This document shows, piece after piece, positions 5,166-48,634 of a stretch of 64,000 nucleotides of DNA (position 1 is the stretch's first letter; each line of letters opens with the position of its first letter). Origin of the DNA: Paraphysomonas bandaiensis (taxonomy: Eukaryota; Protista; Chrysophyceae). A model generated the notes under the pieces. The model saw only the letters and a list, made by a program, of their open reading frames with translations, made no database searches and was not told the origin of the DNA. Both the position numbers and the translations under genes were made by a program. The DNA lies in the NCBI GenBank assembly GCA_965644295.1, contig CBFFRP010000362.1, positions 186,001 to 250,000 of the forward strand, written 5' to 3'.

Positions 5166-7393
5166 CTGACGTTTCCGGACTGCACTCTTCTAGTCATTGC
5201 TGTTTACTAGCAGCTAAACTAGCTTATAGATCAGTTTGGCACGCTGAATTATTTTGAAAATGTTCGCATTTACTGCAAAACAATAAACGAAGTTGACACA
5301 AAAATCATACTTCTCAATTATAACGTGTTGACAGCCTTGAATATTTGCATAGTAGTCTAACTAATTTTCTTGTCTCATTTGTCGTAGTACTACTAATAAT
5401 GTATCGTATTAACGTTTCAATGATAAAAGAAAATTAAAGAGACTGATTGACGAATGGTTTTGTATTCATTCTGGGAGCTGATCCCTCAATATGAAACTAA
5501 GCCTGACCTACATATTACTTATGCTAAACGTAAGTCACTTACACTTTATGTAGTACTGGTACCAAAACGTTCAGTGAGTACAGTCATCATAGCTATAAGA
5601 AGTTGTTTGAAGTCCGTTTGCATAACTTCTATCTTTTCACTTCAATTTGCTAGAGGTATCTGAGTATGTATTATGTATATACACAGTGGTCTGTTGTCTG
5701 TTTGTATATACTATATACGTATATAAAATATACACTGTCACACTTGTTACAAAAATTTACGTTTGTATTGGAATGAGTACAACACTTTATAGTATTCCAT
5801 ATTTCTTTATTACTAATCATATCATTTACATGGATAATCAAAAGCTTACAGCAACGAATATTCTAACACCGTGTGTGAGAATCGAATGTCAAATGCACTC
5901 ATTCGTAGTGAAGAAGTACACACTTTGACTTATGGCTCAGAAACAGTCACCAACGTAGTATAGACAAGTATGTGTGCTGATGATATAGGTAGCAGTATGT
6001 TATGTATATGACGGGATAAAGCTCGGAAACTGCAATAACATGACTCTGATGAAGAATCATTCGAAGACTATGTCAGCCACTCCACAGGTTTAAGAAATAA
6101 TGAAATATACAATGTGTTTACAGCACGAAGTAGGGGGCTAATTCAGCCCCCTAATTTCCAATCTTTTGTGACATGAAAAGTTTACATAGGGTATCAGTTA
6201 CAGACTTTGAGAATATCAGGAGCAGTGCTAGACTGACTTATAATCCTTGCCTGATGAATAATGAACAATCGAATTCCCCGTAGAGCGGGTTGGTTTCAAC
6301 AAAAAGGCAATCATCCTATATCTACATTGTGCCGTTTTGCCACGAATGCAATAAAAAATGAGGCCAACTTGCGACCAATCGTATAAAGCACACCACATCG
6401 TAATTCTATTTTTACTTCTATTATTCAATATCTTGGGATTGAATGAAAGCATTACATTACATTTCAACTTCTATGTTTTGTTCTTTTCTGATGCATACTT
6501 CTGTCAAACTATAATTTTACTTTGTCAATATTATTCAGTAAATAGCAATATACTTTTCTCACGCTATGTTCTGTTTCATCAAGATTGTGTAATAATTCTG
6601 TTAAATTATCTCCATCTCTCTGCTGAAAAATATATTCCGGAGGTAGGAATATTTTACCACTCTTGTAGAATACACCACAACACTCATTAGATATATAAAT
6701 TTTCAAATTGAAATAAAATAGAATATTATTCATACTTATTTCTGTTTTCATAGGCACTAGGGTAAAAATTCATATAACACATAAAAATACATACACTGGT
6801 AGGCCACCATGTCTTTTCCAGAACACGATCTGGCGTTTACACCTGAGTTTGCTGTTTCTATACTTTTCTAGCTGCTCCTACCAGCGTTACACATTGGGAT
6901 GAGTAAAACGTAAATATCTGAATGTTGAACGCACTCAATATTCAAATACTAAACGTATAATCTACACCTCTTATCATTCATTGATATTCGCTGCATAAAA
7001 AATTACAGAACAATATTATCAGATCTTAGATAGACACGATCATATGCTATCAAAGTATTTCAATTTCTCTAGCATAATTAATATCATATCATTATTCATG
7101 TACACAGCCTTTAACTACTGAATTCTTCAAGTAACTGACATAATTCAAATATCTTTTCGAAATACAGCTTGCTCAAAAGCAGCAAAACTCAACAATGGTG
7201 TCTGTATGTAAATACTTGAAGACCAAATGCCATTGTAACACATATGATCCTACACTCGTTATTTTTAGAGACCGCTGATATTTAGAGAATACAAAGTCAT
7301 TTCTACAATAGATACCACAGCGCATGTAATCAGGTAAATACAACAATATATTACAAAATGATATCGAAATGTGCACCAGATCCAGGGCGTGAG

Positions 7394-41777: not shown

Positions 41778-43914
41778 GGGATCTATTATTGAACCTAGTC
41801 AAATTGGTGTAATCTCCTAGTCACACCAAAATTGGTGTAAAAACCTAGTCAAGCGGTTGAAAAACCTAGTCATTTAATAATTCATATTTTCAGTTTACAA
41901 TGACTAGGTTTTATGGTATTCACCTAGTCAAAAATAAAAATTTTCATTCAAACATGGGAGCATACTCTAGCCATCAATTGATAAATGTAGATATTGTATA
42001 CATGCAATACATAACATTATAACGTTGCATTCCAATGAGAAATTGGACAATTTCTCGTGACCATGTCCGGTGCAATTCCATAGCTTCCCAAGGGCCATGA
42101 CATCGGTGGGTTCACCGTTGATGAGGGACACCTCGCTGCATTGTGAGTCTTGATGGAGATCAACATGTGCTTCACATCAATGTTCCCTGAGCACATAATT
42201 AAGATATGTAGAGAGTTATAAATGTATTTTACATACCTCACAAGCGATATTGGGTTTGCACTTGATTATTAAGAGATCTCCCGTACAACATACATAATAT
42301 TATACTGTGGTGCCTGTCATACAATGATTAGCACTCACAAGATTGTGAAACATATTGTGTCATACAATGATCAACAGTCACAAGAACGCAAAATATATTG
42401 TAATATATAAATGCAGAGTACATATCTATTGCACATACCTCTCTAGAGGTAGGATCAATAGCTGCTAGTACCCACAGCGCGGGCAGCTGTAGACAAGAAC
42501 GATAATAATATAGGTTTCGCTCTTGATTTTGTAAGCTTCCTCCCTTACAACATATATATGCTGTGGTACCTATAATACAGTGATCCGTACTCTATTAAAA
42601 CGCATCAGTACAATATAAAACCTAGTCATACACTTACAGTTCAGAGGACCTGAATCCAAAATACGACATACTCATAAGCCAGTCAGAAAGCAAGATGCTG
42701 TAAGACTGATGACACACTCCTCATGATGATGCTGTAAGACTGATGACACACTCCTCATGATGATGCTGTAAGACTGATGACACAATCTTCATGATACTGT
42801 AAGACTGATGACACACTCCTCATGATACTGTAAGACTGATGACACACTCATGATGCTGTAAGACTGATGACACACTCCTCATGATGATGCTGTAAGACTG
42901 ATGACACACTCCTCATGATGATGCTGTAAGACTGATGACACACTCATGATGATGATGCTGTAAGACTGATGACACACTCCTCATGATGATGCTGTAAGAC
43001 TGATGACACACTCCTCATGATGATGCTGTAAGACTGATGACACACTCCTCATGATGATGCTGTAAGACTGATGACACACTCATGATGATGATGCTGTAAG
43101 ACTGATGACACAATCTTCATGATACTGTAAGACTGATGACACACTCATGATGCTGTAAGACTGATGACACACTCATGATGCTGTAAGACTGATGACACAC
43201 TCATGATGCTGTAAGACTGATGACACACTCATGATGCTGTAAGACTGATGACACACTCATGATACTGTAAGACTGATGACACACTCATGATGCTGTAAGA
43301 CTGATGACACACTCATGATGCTGATGTTCTGATTGATGCTGCTCTACAGTCCACTTCAATGATGCTGCTTTTAGAAGTTTGTTCCCTGAAAACCTCCTTT
43401 TTTTCTTCGTTGGACTAAAAATAGGGAGATTTATGCACCCCTGAAAGCCAATACAGCAATCGAAGTCATTCAGTGCTGAAGTGAAGGAAGATGAGCGCCA
43501 TCACTCCCAGCATATGAAGATCTCAAGATGTCCTGCGGATCATAGAGTGAGTTATACCCACAGCTTCATGGACCCTCCTCCCCATAACACTCACAGGGAC
43601 CATCGCTATATGCATACATGCTACAGATAGGCTAGATAGACATACACGTACATCTGTGTTATGTAGATATGTATATATGAGCTTATTGTTATGTTTGAGT
43701 GTTTGTTTTGATGCTCTGTAAGCCACTAATATATTGTGTGGTGTGAGATGGTATCTTAGACAGTCACAGTGTGTAATCAATGGATATAAGAACGACTAGG
43801 TTGAATACCAAAGTTGACTAGGTTGAGTCATTTATTACTTTGACTAGGTTATTCCACCAAAAATAGCGTGACTAGGTAATTCAACCAATTTGACTAGGTT
43901 GAATAATATTTCCC
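41778..43914. mobile_element. Non-autonomous TIR DNA transposon with 9-bp TSD (Mutator/Foldback-like), 2,137 bp
   Basis: 31-bp TIRs gggatctattattgaacctagtcaaattggt / accaatttgactaggttgaataatatttccc (3 mismatches). Exact TSD gtgatagaa at 41769-41777 and 43915-43923. Multiple subterminal cctagtca/tgactagg motifs; no transposase ORF. Confidence 0.9.
42694..43325. repeat. Minisatellite, ~20 units of 28/31/34 bp (core ctgtaagactgatgacaca)
   Basis: Directly visible tandem array inside the TIR element. Confidence 0.95.
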
Positions 43915-44346
43915 GTGATAGAAAATGAGATGCACACATTAATAGTGAGCAGAATAACTAAATAGATGGTTGTCTCGGCGATTGTTGTAGTGAGCGGACA
44001 TTGGTTCTTCTAGTACTGCCACATACCACGCGTTTGTGGTAGTATTGATCCCTGGTGCCACCACCTCTGCTGACGGTTTTGGCATATGGTCACCAGCTCG
44101 TCCAGTCGTCCAGCGTGGGGCCTGCAGCTACTTTATTTCTACTTGCTTCGTTACCCGTTCTCCCTGCCCTTCTGGAGTCTAACTGCAAACTTCTTATTCT
44201 GCTGCTCTTATTGTCGCACTCGTTCAACCGTGTTATAGAGCACACAGTGCCCGTGTGTCAGTCCTACCCGCAATAGTGTCCTCCTGCTGTCTTCGGTTGG
44301 TGGGTCGGCGCAGAATGCCTTCAAACCCAAGTGTTGTCAAACCCCA

Positions 44347-44631
44347 TATCCCATTCTGAGCGCGTACTTAGGTAGATTCGGATGGGGGCCGGGTGGGTAC
44401 CTAACTAATACTTGATTTAAGTCCCATACGTCATTTGCTAGCTACCTACTGAACCCAACTAGCTACATCATTATCACATGGTATTCAGCGCTGAATATGC
44501 AGTGAGAACCCAGAGTGGGGAACTGCTGAACTAAGCAATGTGTACATAGGTAGAGGTGCGCGGTCGCAGCACTCAGCAGCACCCACTAGAGGGCCGCACG
44601 CAGTAATTAGTTACGCTGTCAATATGGGGCA
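44347..44631 (+). mobile_element. 285-bp element E, copy 1 (solo-LTR-like or TIR element)
   Basis: About 7 differences from the copy at 46466-46750. Flanked by cccca (44342-44346) and gttat (44632-44636). Confidence 0.9.
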
Positions 44632-45329
44632 GTTATAGTTGCTCCATCTGATGATCTCTCTGTATATATGTTGTGACAGTATTCTATCTCTGAGAGGTCA
44701 TATCAGTTAACTATAATTACAATATGAGTGTATCACAACCAGCAGCTAATACACACACACTGATCGCAATATATCTATGCTAATGGAGCTCACCATCCGT
44801 TTATTAGTTCGAGTTAGGATTGAGATAGTGATAGATATTTAAGATATGGCTCTATGACATGGCATACTATACTATACTATACTATACTATCATTCTAGTG
44901 GATGTGTCTGTATATCGTAAGATATTCCATACATGGAGATAATTAACAAATTCCATATTTTAAACTATTTATTTTAAAAATGACAGAAATGAGTCTGATT
45001 ATTAATCGACAGTGTCAAAACGCATACACTCAACACTTTAAACACACCTTAAGATATTTGGAAGTATTCCAGTCCAATCAGTAGGTTTTGATATATATCA
45101 AACAACTGGAACAAAGGTGACATACAGCAGTGTGCGTGTATTTACTGTGTATATCCAGCACACAGCCACTCGCCATATAACGCGGTTCCTGCTATTCCCA
45201 CACATAAACCGTTGGAACTTCCACGTCACACACACCATTTCACTTCACACATACACACTTTTCAGTATCCAGTCTCATATACATACATCTACATCATCAA
45301 TCATCATATTGTAAACTTCTGTTAATTTA

Positions 45330-45849
45330 ATGGATATAAGTATTGACGTTCTCAGGCAGGTTTTCCGGGAGGAGTTTAACTCCGCAATAAAGCCTAATTA
45401 TTAATATATAGACAGGCTAACCTCTGTGGAAGTCAGTACACTTGTAACTACCATGAAGATGGCAAACTCATCCGTCGGAAGAGATGATTCTCTTTCTGTT
45501 GTGCCCAAAGGCTTTATTTCGGAGAAGCTTTTGTCTTTATTCCAGTCATTTACTAATCCACTGGGAAGGCTCTCGTTGCCAGCAACAAGTAGATTGCCAA
45601 TCGTTTGAGGATACTCACAAGTCGGGTTCGTCCCATCTTGTTTGGGCACAACAGAAAGAGAATGGATTAGTAAATGATTGGAATAAAGACAAAAGCTTGC
45701 GTTTGCTGCGAGAATACGACCCCACATACGAAACAGACGTTGATAGTGGCAATGAGTGGAGTGAACGGTCAAGAAATCGACGGTTGCGTGTAGCACGTAC
45801 AATAGGAATAACGCGAGCGCAGCTAAACTTCGCACAGTTGACACTGTAG
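45330..45849 (+). pseudogene. Pseudogene of a ~145-aa protein (Mug135-like C-terminal pattern), broken by a stop codon and an internal inversion
   Basis: The reconstructed protein is MDISIDVLRQVFREEFNSAIKPNY*YIDRLTSVEV...MANSSVGRDDSLSVVPKQDGTNPTCEYPQTIGNLLVAGNESLPSGLVNDWNKDKSLRLLREYDP...RRLRVARTIGITRAQLNFAQLTL. The middle part lies on the minus strand (45525-45663). Confidence 0.75.
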
Positions 45850-46465
45850 GGTTGTTCTTATGGTGGTATACAGGGGTATTCCGGTACGACCGGGGTAGTT
45901 AGATGAATCAGGTCCTTTACGGCATGAGGATTTTTGATGAATTGTCAATTTAAGCCGGTATACCCTTTAGTCAAGCTTTGACGGAGTAACTAAATACCTT
46001 CCACTTTTAACACGTCCTTCTCACGCACCGCTCACTCACAAACAGACCCTGCAACACTCACAACCACAGCACATCCCCTTAAGCCGATTTAAGCTTAGTA
46101 ATAGTAAGAAGAATGTTGTGATTATTAGAGTGTAAAGTGATGAACACAGTAAAGTAGAAATTGAATAATAATGCAGCACATAACTATCACATACAACGGA
46201 ATAGTTAGAAGTATAATAACTGACAATGACGATCAAGTATTTTCAACAGGTACAATCATTAATTCTGTAATAACCAGCTATCCGGTTATTTTATGCTATA
46301 TAAGCTCTCTATTGTATATACTTAAGTTTGATTCACTTTTATATTTGATGTAATCTCCGAATTATGCAGATTTCAGAGAGACTTGAGGTCACTGTTCAGG
46401 ATACGATAATAGCGTTAAACAGGAGTACAATGATCGCTCTACCCCTCATCCAGGGTAGTTGTTAT

Positions 46466-46750
46466 TGCCCCATTCTGAGCGCGTACTTAGGTAGATTCGG
46501 ATGGGGGCCGGGTGGGTACCTAACTAATACTTGATTTAAGTCCCATACGTTATTTGCTAGCTACCTACTGAACCCAACTAGCTACATCATTATCACATGG
46601 TATTCAGCGCTGAATATGCAGGGAGAACCCAGAGTGGGGAACTGCTGAACTAAGCAATGTGTACATAAGTAGAGGTGCGCGGTCGCAGCAGTCAGCAGCA
46701 CCCACTAGAGGGCCGCACGCAGTAATTAGATACGCTGTCAATATGGGGCA
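46466..46750 (+). mobile_element. 285-bp element E, copy 2
   Basis: TG...CA termini with 20-bp imperfect TIRs (tgccccattctgagcgcgta / tacgctgtcaatatggggca, 16/20). Flanked by gttat (46461-46465) and cccca (46751-46755). Confidence 0.9.
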
Positions 46751-46756
46751 CCCCAT

Positions 46757-46916
46757 CACTAGTGAAATGGAGAAGTTCAAAAGAAGTTCATAAGGTAGTT
46801 CGCTCAAGTTCATTGTTGCATGAACTACCATTTGAACTTTCACACTCCACACTTTTTATGAACTGCCTTTTGAACTACCTTATAACTACCTTTTCAGCTT
46901 CCTGATTTCACTAGTG
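46757..46916. mobile_element. CACTA-like MITE, 160 bp
   Basis: Perfect 12-bp TIRs cactagtgaaat / atttcactagtg and mirrored subterminal agttca/tgaact repeats. The 3-bp TSD is not clean (cat vs cca). Confidence 0.7.
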
Positions 46917-48634
46917 CCAGGCGAGTACGGAGAGTAGACTTATCATCGCGCTGGGTGCGCAGAAACACACTACAAACTTTGCAGATGCTTTCTTGGGTTG
47001 ATGAGGTTGTTACTCCCTTAATCAAGGGGCCTGATATACACCCATATCAGTACTAAAGCGCATGCATTTATTACGATTAATATACGCACTTTACATTCTT
47101 CACTTGTGTACTTTCGATGCACAGTGGGAAGTTCCACTTAAGAACACCAACCTATAGCCTCAACAAGAGCCCTCTCTCTGGCCATGGACGGCATTGTGGG
47201 TCCTCCATTGTCACTGCTGTCTGGCACAGTCAAGTGTTTCAACACCGTATTTATAGCCCTTTTCTGGGGTACGCATGCTGGCAGGGTGCCACTAGAGACA
47301 GCTTCAAGTACTTCTCCAATTATTAGGGTGTGGCTCTGAGGATTCAGTCGCATACCGCTGTTGGCAGTATTTTTCGTAGATTTCTGATTGGATTGCTTTA
47401 ACATTCTCTAACTAATGCAAATTAGCATAAAATTTCAAATGGAGGACAGCTTGTAGTCTATAGCAATCAGTTTAATGTACGTGTATAGTTTCATATGATC
47501 GAGATGCTTATGGCGGGAGCTGAGAGCAGATCAAACTACTTAAAACAAAAAAAGACTTGTTCTGAGGCGACTTCAGTTCGAAAAGCGGCGGTAATCCGTA
47601 ATCGTGCACCGACTTCCTAGTACTGCTGTATACGCCGTATATGTGAGATCCACCCAAAGATTCTGCTGTCCACGGCACAGGAACACTGAATCCTGCTCCT
47701 TCACTGTAACTAGAATCACCACATAGACGATGAATGTTGTGCGTGTATCAACTATAACGCTGATATCACTATACACCTTATCAATTGGATGCATAGATGT
47801 TGCACAGCAAGGGGACTACGATGAAAGGATATTGCTTCGAGCAGATGTGGCTAAGAACTGTAATAAGCACTGTACCAACCTCTCTAGTTATCTGCAGTTG
47901 TGATCGTAGTATGATACGCTCTTGACATATCGTTTAGACACCATCCTTGTTCTTTTGAGGGGAAAACCGTGTTGAGAGAGATCTGCTCACTTCCTGATAT
48001 TGAGCTCCTAGTGTAGAGTGCGCGGGTAGAATTTGTACACTAATCTTCTGTCTGAGAAGCGTAAATACTTATTGGCATAGGAAATAAAAGTATATTTAAT
48101 GGATCACTCATTCTCAAACAAATAAGATAAATGCGTTACAAATAAGATATTGACAGTGAATGACACGTCATACATTACAGTGTCCAAAGATGGATGCCAA
48201 ACGTTCCCCATGGTTTGTTCAGCATCATGGCATAGCAGGATTAGTTGTTGTATACTTGTTACTTTATTAATACGAGATGCATATACGCATTGTACACACC
48301 TTGCATAGCGTAGAAACTAACATCTAAGTATTAATACCCCATATAATTTAAATACGGTTTGTAAGTTTATATTCTAAGTGCGTTTCCAAACGCTCTACTA
48401 TACGAATTTATTACTGATAAATATATCGCTTGGAAAAGTATACCGATCCTACATGCTACTCCTATAATATCGAAAGAGAACAATATTTCTCATAGGGTCA
48501 TTGAAGTTATTGTCGAATGGCCATAGGAATCCCGATGATTGTAAATTACTAACTTACATGTATCAAAAACAACAAGCTAACTATAATTAGTATCCACTGA
48601 TCTATCCTGATTTCATTCTACTGCTCACATAATC

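Follow-up and report, generated by a model that had tools for sequence, protein, structure and literature searches.

The 64,000-nucleotide stretch of Paraphysomonas bandaiensis DNA analysed here (the window) contains two direct 285-bp copies of a repeat, E1 and E2, on either side of a non-coding cargo. The best explanation of this arrangement, in which we have about even confidence, is that a circle carrying one E copy recombined homologously into an older solo LTR of the same family. Reading of the sequence and alignment of the copies with their flanks gave the order CCCCA / E1 / GTTAT / 1824-bp cargo / GTTAT / E2 / CCCCA, in which the 5-bp duplications are reciprocally swapped between the outer and the inner junctions of E1 and E2 (Table 1). 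The inner 5-mers are separated by 1824 bp, or span 1834 bp when both are counted, and E1 and E2, which are in the same orientation, differ by seven substitutions without indels (E positions 2, 3, 86, 157, 203, 226 and 265). The junction pattern cccca-E-gttat...gttat-E-cccca had been described in the original prediction and is exact, and its direct repeats with about seven differences were recovered by the alignment.

Table 1. Positions of the features at the locus, numbered from the first nucleotide of the window
Feature	Position	Strand	Basis or remark
Left host-repeat part, recipient of the whole unit	43915..44346	.	Alignment to paralogs
CCCCA, left outer 5-bp target-site duplication	44342..44346	+	Sequence; single copy in five paralogs
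E1, 285-bp LTR copy	44347..44631	+	Alignment; 3 derived changes at positions 1-86, right part as consensus
Putative crossover interval in E1 (E positions 87-156, 70-bp tract same in E2)	44433..44502	+	
Counterpart of the putative crossover interval in E2	46552-46621		Between positions 86 and 157, derived states pass from E1 to E2
GTTAT, left inner 5-bp repeat	44632..44636	+	Read as half of a duplication from E insertion into the cargo DNA
Cargo, 1824 bp, non-coding, single-copy apart from nested repeats	44637..46460	.	
Long inverted repeat in the cargo, 212 nt	45487..45698	.	Hairpin, -83.6 kcal/mol
Nested high-copy MITE-like repeat in the cargo	46083..46330	.	TTAAG at both edges
GTTAT, right inner 5-bp repeat	46461..46465	+	
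E2, 285-bp LTR copy	46466..46750	+	Left part as consensus; 4 derived changes in right part (157-265)
CCCCA, right outer target-site duplication	46751..46755	+	Sequence and paralog alignments
Right host-repeat part, including the inverted-repeat stretch 46757-46916	46751..47596	.	Paralog alignment

Judging from its termini and relatives, E is an LTR of the integrase-inserted kind, ending in TG..CA and flanked by TSDs of 5 bp. At least 232 copies are present in the 62.5-Mb genome, and 28 copies were analysed together with 1.5-kb flanks. The TG...CA ends and 20-bp imperfect TIRs claimed earlier are borne out by the family ends, TGCCCC...GGGGCA, where the first 20 nt and the reverse-complemented last 20 nt agree at 16 of 20 positions; E1 starts with TAT and thus has two private changes from these ends. 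No ORF was found in E. Perfect 5-bp TSDs flank the solo copies L019, L020, L021 and L027, and PBS or PPT junctions have been kept in approximately ten copies. These canonical copies have a PBS of the self-priming type, with 7+9 bp pairing with E positions 26-42 (the duplex energies of L010 and L022 lie at the 0.5-1% percentile of random 30-mers), and a G-rich PPT, acgggtgggggg, located directly before the TG of the 3' LTR. The presence of a PBS and a PPT in relatives of E points to reverse transcription and integrase. Since about 95% of the family is non-canonical (at least 232 copies compared to about ten with PBS or PPT junctions), LTR-LTR recombination appears to be frequent in it. Elements of the tyrosine-recombinase type (DIRS/Ngaro) insert without target-site duplication and have split or inverted repeats, and membership in this group is contradicted by the 5-bp duplications at the locus and at the solo E copies. 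Assignment of E to copia was also considered but not upheld, as the pol-like ORFs that precede E in L013 matched no Pfam domain; these ORFs probably belong to a different element, itself hit by an E pair.

The whole unit lies in a copy of a host repeat, whose paralogs provide empty sites for comparison. The left flank (query positions 556-987) aligns at 89-94% identity with C78, C150, C33, C133 and C58, and these alignments stop exactly at the insertion point, while the right flank (query positions 1-846) aligns contiguously at 86-92% identity with six paralogs. In five paralogs, each with a single CCCCA, the alignments of the two flanks have exactly 5 bp in common, and on these coordinates the outer CCCCA duplication is therefore a genuine one. 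When the empty host site that is predicted was sought directly with 32-nt and 22-nt patterns (up to 3 mismatches), there were no matches, so that the support for the empty site comes from the alignment coordinates; the blank results were taken as uninformative, and the pattern search was apparently seed-limited, its earlier 3-mismatch matches all containing at least 14 exact bases. No metagenome contig running across the outer junction, as a possible solo-LTR allele, was found. The inverted-repeat stretch to the right of the unit had been regarded as an adjacent, separately inserted MITE, but the paralogs align straight through it. Similarly, the reading frame that was to be restored by removing both the insert and this MITE still contains a stop and adds no support.

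Both inner junctions are located precisely at LTR termini and carry the identical 5-mer GTTAT. When the right-hand 5-mers of E copies were compared with the left-hand 5-mers of other copies, 2 of 784 comparisons gave identity, which corresponds to an empirical chance of 0.26% (about 0.1-0.3%). Because the two inner junctions lie at the exact LTR termini and share one 5-mer, the cargo must, as far as the junctions can be read, once have been a circle (or a tandem unit) with a single E at gttat, and the idea of a circular or tandem cargo opened at gttat, already put forward in the original prediction, fits these junctions. When partner junctions on the same contig were sought for other E copies with GT-type flanks (20 GT-class junctions), none was found but at the present locus. 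As no second pair occurs among the GT-class left flanks checked, the event looks like a single, one-off event.

The distribution of the seven differences between E1 and E2 also bears on the history of the locus. The derived state is found in E1 at positions 2, 3 and 86 and in E2 at positions 157, 203, 226 and 265. The E halves that touch the outer flanks thus carry, when joined, all seven derived changes, five of which are strictly private, whereas the halves that touch the cargo carry none and, when joined, give the version closest to every sampled family member. Under random post-insertion mutation, a perfect partition in this direction has a probability of p = 8/128 = 0.06, or of 1/35 given the 3/4 split. 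With this modest significance (p about 0.06), the mosaic fits one crossover, located within E positions 87-156, that joined an old LTR resident at the site to the young LTR of a circular or tandem cargo, and there is modest reason to regard E1 and E2 as reciprocal chimeras of two distinct parents. On the other side, E1 and E2 share a subfamily haplotype at five polymorphic sites which is carried by only ~10% of the sampled copies; such a common haplotype is expected if both derive from a single LTR and counts against circle integration. Differences between replica copies should be scattered at random, but all seven instead partition by position (p about 0.06), a distribution that leans modestly against replicas of one element. 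Of the three routes considered in the original prediction, the distribution of these differences favours the one in which a circle bearing E recombines with a chromosomal copy of E, whereas replicative cointegrate formation and composite transposition are disfavoured because both start with two identical copies.

An artefact of assembly could mimic such a mosaic. If a solo E at this site and a separate circular or tandem E+cargo molecule had been joined by mis-threading via the identical 70-bp tract, a collapsed-repeat graph would give exactly the observed path and mosaic, with the switch inside the SNP-free tract. We consider this unlikely, as the 669 contigs for 62.5 Mb suggest long reads, which would easily span 2.4 kb. 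It would moreover still require a circular or tandem E+cargo molecule, and the central inference therefore survives.

A genome search showed that the cargo is unique in the 62.5-Mb genome, its nested repeats aside. Its MITE-like repeat gave 549 and 102 candidate copies in genome searches, and the central 98 bp of its hairpin (45546-45643) recur at C431:272058-272155 and C620:3748-3828. Neither a tRNA nor a Pfam domain was found in the cargo, and an Rfam scan of positions 43800-47700 (E<=1) detected no ribozyme, the sole match being a sub-threshold, miRNA-like one in the hairpin. The promoter-like tract and the small gene relic that had been read in the cargo thus have no counterpart in Pfam, Rfam or the tRNA search. 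At the start of the cargo, complementarity to E extends over no more than 6 nt, which is at random level, and there is no TGG-type start; a self-priming or tRNA-type PBS was rejected there, its -19.0 kcal/mol duplex falling at the 8th percentile of random 30-mers. No PPT precedes E2, the cargo ending in ...ccagggtagttgttat/TG compared to acgggtgggggg/TG in the canonical copies. Alignment of the cargo ends with the internal ends of canonical copies revealed no decayed homology, the z-scores being about 0 (about -1 for the cargo end), compared to more than 100 for the controls. The earlier statement that no PBS, polypurine tract or gag/pol is visible therefore holds for this single-copy cargo, and the locus is not an ordinary LTR element. 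Other E-internal-E copies with the same internal region, which had been named as evidence against a circular origin, were searched for and none was found.

TRIM and LARD elements also have a TSD of 5 bp and short direct TG..CA LTRs that enclose a non-coding interior, and a non-autonomous element of this kind might have been retrotransposed as a unit, generating CCCCA, the identity of the inner GTTAT repeats then being coincidental. Besides the direct LTRs, their TG..CA ends and the genuine outer duplication, this would account for the common subfamily haplotype of E1 and E2 and for their having no shared private changes, as expected for copies of one template; an LTR divergence of 2.5% is ordinary, and a very large scan will produce coincidences at the 0.1-0.3% level. 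We nevertheless consider it rather unlikely. The PBS (8th percentile) and the PPT are absent, the interior is single-copy and unlike the canonical internal ends of the family, a second 5-bp duplication is present at the inner junctions whose match has a chance of ~0.26%, and the perfect outer/inner partition of the seven differences (p about 0.06) is not predicted. Because the cargo is unique, has neither PBS nor PPT and does not resemble the internal region of the E family, E1-cargo-E2 is, by these comparisons, not a TRIM/LARD family member, and the cargo was probably not retrotransposed as a unit with E1 and E2. Retrozymes likewise pass through a circular intermediate and consist of direct repeats of ~300 bp with a short non-coding stretch between them; their repeats contain hammerhead ribozymes and they have both a PBS and a PPT (PMC4918200), whereas the present locus has no ribozyme in the Rfam scan and neither PBS nor PPT.

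The favoured history, homologous integration of an LTR-bearing circle, would comprise three steps. First, an E-family LTR element would have inserted at CCCCA into a copy of the host repeat, an insertion shown by the paralogs, and the resident E would have been kept, probably as a solo LTR, and would have gained about seven private mutations. Second, as the inner junctions suggest, a much younger E would have been inserted by integrase at GTTAT into unrelated non-coding DNA, which was or became a circle of ~2.1 kb (E + cargo), a tandem unit being topologically equivalent. Third, one reciprocal crossover between the resident and the incoming LTR, within the 70-bp identical tract (87-156), would have integrated the circle into the chromosome in the Campbell-type or 'ends-in' manner. 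The product would be two chimeric direct LTRs, with the outer duplication stemming from the first event and the inner one from the second. The two TSDs are indeed reciprocally distributed, with CCCCA outside and GTTAT inside, each parental repeat having its own flanks, and transposase-driven replication would be unnecessary.

No source locus or free circle was found in the genome assembly or in metagenome contigs, and no second cargo copy in the assembly. Likewise, the uninterrupted cargo copy predicted to read ...ggtagttGTTATagttgctcc... was not found in the genome (up to 3 mismatches) or in the metagenome contigs. This absence also weighs on a history without any free circle, in which gene conversion or synthesis-dependent strand annealing would have copied a tandem donor located elsewhere (...E-gttat-cargo-gttat-E...) into the resident LTR after its breakage, with the E copies as homology arms. 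Such copying would yield the identical junctions as well as the LTR mosaic, and tandem E+flank duplications do occur in this genome (C297, E-gtaag-X), but the donor should persist and more steps are needed than for one crossover with a circle, which makes it quite unlikely.

Campbell-type integration, as known from yeast integrative plasmids and as proposed for eccDNA at LTRs, likewise involves a repeat-bearing circle and a chromosomal copy of the repeat, the target already carrying the repeat and the insert ending up between two direct, reciprocally chimeric repeats. The present case differs in being a natural footprint in a protist, in which both parental LTRs have their own integrase-made 5-bp duplications, and in that the cargo is anonymous non-coding DNA rather than a Ty element, a selectable gene or a replication origin. 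To our knowledge, eccDNA reintegration is widely invoked for structural change, but cases at base-pair resolution have seldom been described outside yeast experiments and tumours; circle-into-solo-LTR recombination has been proposed for yeast, its genomic footprint being rarely seen. Here, since both parental LTRs carry their own 5-bp duplications, the two integrase signatures (CCCCA and GTTAT) and the chimeric LTR pair would make one natural event readable from the sequence alone. If this is true, solo LTRs can serve as landing pads for circular DNA, which would provide a route for arbitrary DNA, potentially including genes, to pass between loci without transposition. The value of the locus is mechanistic and not biological, because the cargo has no evident function and the event is apparently one-off. 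Transfer of DNA to loci that bear LTRs, by recombination of eccDNA with a solo LTR in the genome, has been put forward as a speculation (Moller et al. 2015, PMC4751563).

The junctions of the locus are also those of the cointegrates formed by IS6/IS26 and Tn3 elements, in the order donor flank, element, target duplication, target replicon, target duplication, element and donor flank. The same arrangement might thus result from transposition at the DNA level via the E ends, either as a Shapiro-type cointegrate (IS6/Tn3) or as a composite insertion by alternative transposition and re-replication in the style of maize Ac. This textbook junction pattern, the near-identical terminal inverted repeats of E (16/20) and the inverted E pair of C358, with its palindromic inner flanks and direct cagtg repeat, speak for such a process, which is nevertheless highly improbable. 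In IS6/IS26 and Tn3, an encoded transposase nicks and copies the element, the copies being identical at birth, whereas E has no ORF and is an LTR, and its two copies at the locus look like reciprocal chimeras with an old and a young parent; both DNA-level routes begin with identical copies and are disfavoured by the mosaic. LTR integrases act on linear cDNA ends, and E is an LTR with relatives bearing a PBS and a PPT. The analogy to IS6/Tn3 drawn in the original prediction is unsupported as a mechanism, because E is no IS-like element but an LTR whose canonical partners have a PBS and a PPT. After re-replication, the donor locus should have stayed intact and none was found, nor was any further [E]B...B[E] pair among the GT-class junctions checked. 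In maize Ac/Ds macrotransposons and composite insertions, two copies of a small element likewise flank or move the intervening DNA and the TSDs are not simple; however, the inner flanks of a macrotransposon differ, as they stem from independent insertions, whereas they are identical here, and E is not a cut-and-paste element. It is very doubtful that an integrase or related DDE enzyme acts on chromosomal E ends and thereby produces genuine cointegrates and composites, of which the direct pair at the locus and the inverted pair of C358 would be examples; if E ends did act at the DNA level, they would constitute a eukaryotic analogue of IS26-type gene mobilisation.

Two further arrangements of E were observed elsewhere in the genome. 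In C297, a tandem E+flank duplication consists of the repeated unit E-gtaag-X. In C358, an inverted E pair has perfectly palindromic inner flanks of 906 bp and lies between two direct copies of the 5-mer cagtg. Intramolecular replicative inversion was rejected for this pair, as the flank pattern that it predicts does not fit; it looks as if two E ends had moved together as DNA.

The locus lies in a eukaryotic assembly of 62.5 Mb in 669 contigs. When positions 43900-47200 were read and both copies of the E family (E1 and E2) were aligned together with their flanks, the junction layout as first described was found to be correct to the single base. Pairwise alignment of the two direct copies, 285 bp each, showed 7 substitutions and 0 indels. 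The family termini read TGCCCC...GGGGCA, and the end 20 nucleotides form an imperfect inverted repeat (16/20).

Features of the E-cargo-E locus and its surroundings (positions in the window)
Feature	Position	Remarks	Source
Host repeat, left side of block	43915-44346		
Outer 5-mer, left	44342-44346	CCCCA	window sequence
E1	44347-44631	direct orientation to E2	window sequence
Inner 5-mer, left	44632-44636	GTTAT	window sequence
Cargo	between the two GTTAT 5-mers	1824 bp	
Hairpin in cargo	45487-45698	212 nt, near-perfect; 23- and 36-bp arms; -83.6 kcal/mol	
MITE-like repeat nested in cargo	46083-46330	TTAAG on both edges	
Inner 5-mer, right	46461-46465	GTTAT	window sequence
E2	46466-46750	direct orientation to E1	window sequence
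Outer 5-mer, right	46751-46755	CCCCA	window sequence
Host repeat, right side of block	46751-47596		

At least 232 candidate copies of E are present genome-wide, and 28 were retrieved with 1.5-kb flanks. Four of the 28 are cleanly solo, each flanked by a perfect 5-bp duplication (gttgt, aatat, gaagc or atgtc), which indicates that E was inserted by an integrase-type enzyme making 5-bp staggered cuts. In two copies (L010 and L022) E is followed on its 3' side by cCCCCCATCC...AAATCTAC, a tract that matches a self-priming type of PBS. It forms a 7+9-bp duplex with positions 26-42 of E, and the energies of -24.5 and -26.1 kcal/mol lie within the best 0.5-1% for random 30-mers. The G-rich tract acgggtgggggg lies directly 5' of E in L007 and L024. 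The whole genome holds ~9 E-PBS and ~11 PPT-E junctions, and one such pair on contig C69, with 12.6 kb between them, probably marks a complete element. As PBS/PPT partners exist but are few compared with the copy number, E is an LTR, of a family that is overwhelmingly solo or rearranged. The probable full-length member (G000:C69:333504-346690, ~12.9 kb) has a 5' LTR with PBS and left flank gtcgt, and a PPT-LTR junction at 346403; in the first 1.5 kb past the 5' LTR gag is not obvious, and a long antisense repetitive ORF is found instead. The pol-like ORFs adjoining E in copy L013 gave no Pfam match and probably belong to another element.

The inner junctions coincide exactly with the LTR termini, and the 5-mer GTTAT is found at both; among unrelated E loci, the right 5-mer of one equalled the left 5-mer of another in 2/784 comparisons. 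On the simplest reading, GTTAT would be the duplication left by the insertion of a single E in the cargo DNA. Since this duplication now lies between the two E copies, on the inner side of each, the cargo's far ends would once have been joined, and the cargo would thus have been a circle or a tandem unit, so that this part of the original interpretation is borne out. No source copy of the cargo and no free circle were detected in the genome assembly or metagenome contigs, nor was a solo allele of the site in the latter.

The original interpretation would have been refuted had the cargo been the fixed interior of a TRIM/LARD family, always bounded by gttat. A gttat-to-gttat interior shared with other E copies was searched for and not found, the cargo being single-copy genome-wide except for two nested pieces, the MITE-like repeat and a 98-bp piece of the hairpin. 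Neither its initial 250 bp nor its final 300 bp resemble the canonical regions on the PBS side and the PPT side (z ~0; positive controls, z >100), and the pairing of its start with E reaches only the 8th percentile of random sequence. These results exclude such a family and largely exclude retrotransposition of E-cargo-E as one unit; judged from its sequence, the cargo is not the interior of an element. Neither an Rfam family above threshold nor a tRNA-like sequence or Pfam domain was found in it. The central 98-bp loop region of the hairpin recurs at C431:272058-272155 and C620:3748-3828, the latter ~350 bp from a further E copy.

The block is flanked by a host repeat, and in five other copies of that repeat (C78, C150, C33, C133 and C58) the left-flank alignment ends 5 bp past the start of the right-flank alignment. 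By these alignment coordinates, rather than by displayed sequence, the paralogs appear uninterrupted with the 5-mer present once, and the outer CCCCA duplication is real. The 5-bp overlap places the entire 2404-bp block in one integrase-type target site. The predicted empty site was also sought directly with two patterns (<=3 mismatches); neither gave a match, which we take as a sensitivity limit, since every prior 3-mismatch match had at least 14 exact bases. The supposed adjacent MITE (46757-46916) belongs to the host repeat in all paralogs, and the restored reading frame adduced for once-contiguous flanks proved uninformative and is superfluous. The ccccatc following E2 (46751-46757) is a 7-nt match to the canonical PBS cccccatcc at the identical offset from the LTR end; by the paralogs it is host sequence, and the match may be coincidence or target bias. 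The host repeat abuts a 555-bp repeat (43360-43914) with >500 candidate copies at 97-100% identity, hence very young and very abundant, just downstream of a minisatellite of 28/34-bp tandem units (43000-43350).

The seven E1/E2 differences were polarised against 29 other E copies. E1 is derived at positions 2, 3 and 86, and E2 at positions 157, 203, 226 and 265. The outer-flank halves combined give an LTR with 7/7 derived changes, 5 of them strictly private (family median 2), and the cargo-side halves an LTR with none, the nearest version to every sampled copy. This is the partition predicted by a single crossover between an old and a young LTR: one reciprocal exchange within the identical 70-bp tract at positions 87-156 would have joined the old one, already resident, to the young one that came in. 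The mosaic thus favours recombination among the routes first proposed; replicative cointegration and composite transposition do not predict it, as both begin with two identical copies. The statistics are modest, the chance of a perfect partition in the observed direction being 8/128 = 0.06, or 1/35 given the 3/4 split, and as a counter-indication E1 and E2 share one subfamily haplotype at 5 polymorphic sites, found in about one in ten sampled copies. The mechanism has perhaps an even chance of being homologous integration of the Campbell type, in which a circle that carries the repeat enters the chromosome, as is classical with integrative plasmids of yeast. An assembly graph of collapsed repeats that joined a free circle to a solo LTR would yield the same sequence, mosaic included, but would still require a circular or tandem E+cargo molecule; we consider such mis-threading improbable.

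Bacterial IS6/Tn3 cointegrates share this junction pattern, although homologous integration would be the likelier mechanism here. We favour reading E-cargo-E as a cointegrate-like product for which a circle and recombination suffice; IS-like replication is not supported, so that the original interpretation holds in part. Macrotransposons with swapped TSDs have two differing inner flanks, whereas those of E-cargo-E are identical. Retrozymes are characterised by hammerheads (PMC4918200), and their absence at the locus excludes this identity. For yeast, Moller et al. 2015 (PMC4751563) speculated that recombination of eccDNA with a solo LTR in the genome might carry DNA to loci that bear LTRs. LTR-rich eccDNA and its reinsertion have been discussed in Magnaporthe (PMC9694575).

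E-cargo-E looks like a single event rather than a family habit, since among the 20 junctions at which E is preceded by GTNNN, a same-contig [E]B...B[E] pair occurs at this locus only. The arrangement gtaag-E...E-gtaag on C297 is an ordinary TSD-flanked element.

Other arrangements of E were observed. Copies L013 and L012 (G000:C358:82977-83258, +, and 92121-92402, -) form an inverted pair ~9 kb apart; the 906 bp after each CA end begin with gtcct and are 100% identical, thus palindromic. A direct 5-bp repeat (cagtg) encloses the whole arrangement, which resembles a composite unit that has two TG ends and was inserted in a single piece, and neither simple LTR-LTR recombination nor replicative inversion accounts for it. 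L014 and L011 (G000:C210:3095-3376, +, and 5471-5755, -) are inverted around a 2.1-kb spacerless palindrome with inner flanks beginning gtgtc and no outer duplication; its arms are 97.6% identical, so that it is not a fresh assembly artefact. At L015 (G000:C297:257739-259220), E and 923 bp of downstream flank are tandemly duplicated. The first E there adjoins a fragment of another E, and the second is truncated at position 15. GT directly follows the terminal CA in 13/28 sampled copies (L004, L008, L011-L016, L019, L023, L025, L029 and the window locus) versus ~2 expected, and starts the left-flank 5-mer in 5/28; the right-flank excess may reflect a target preference or some property of the junction itself.
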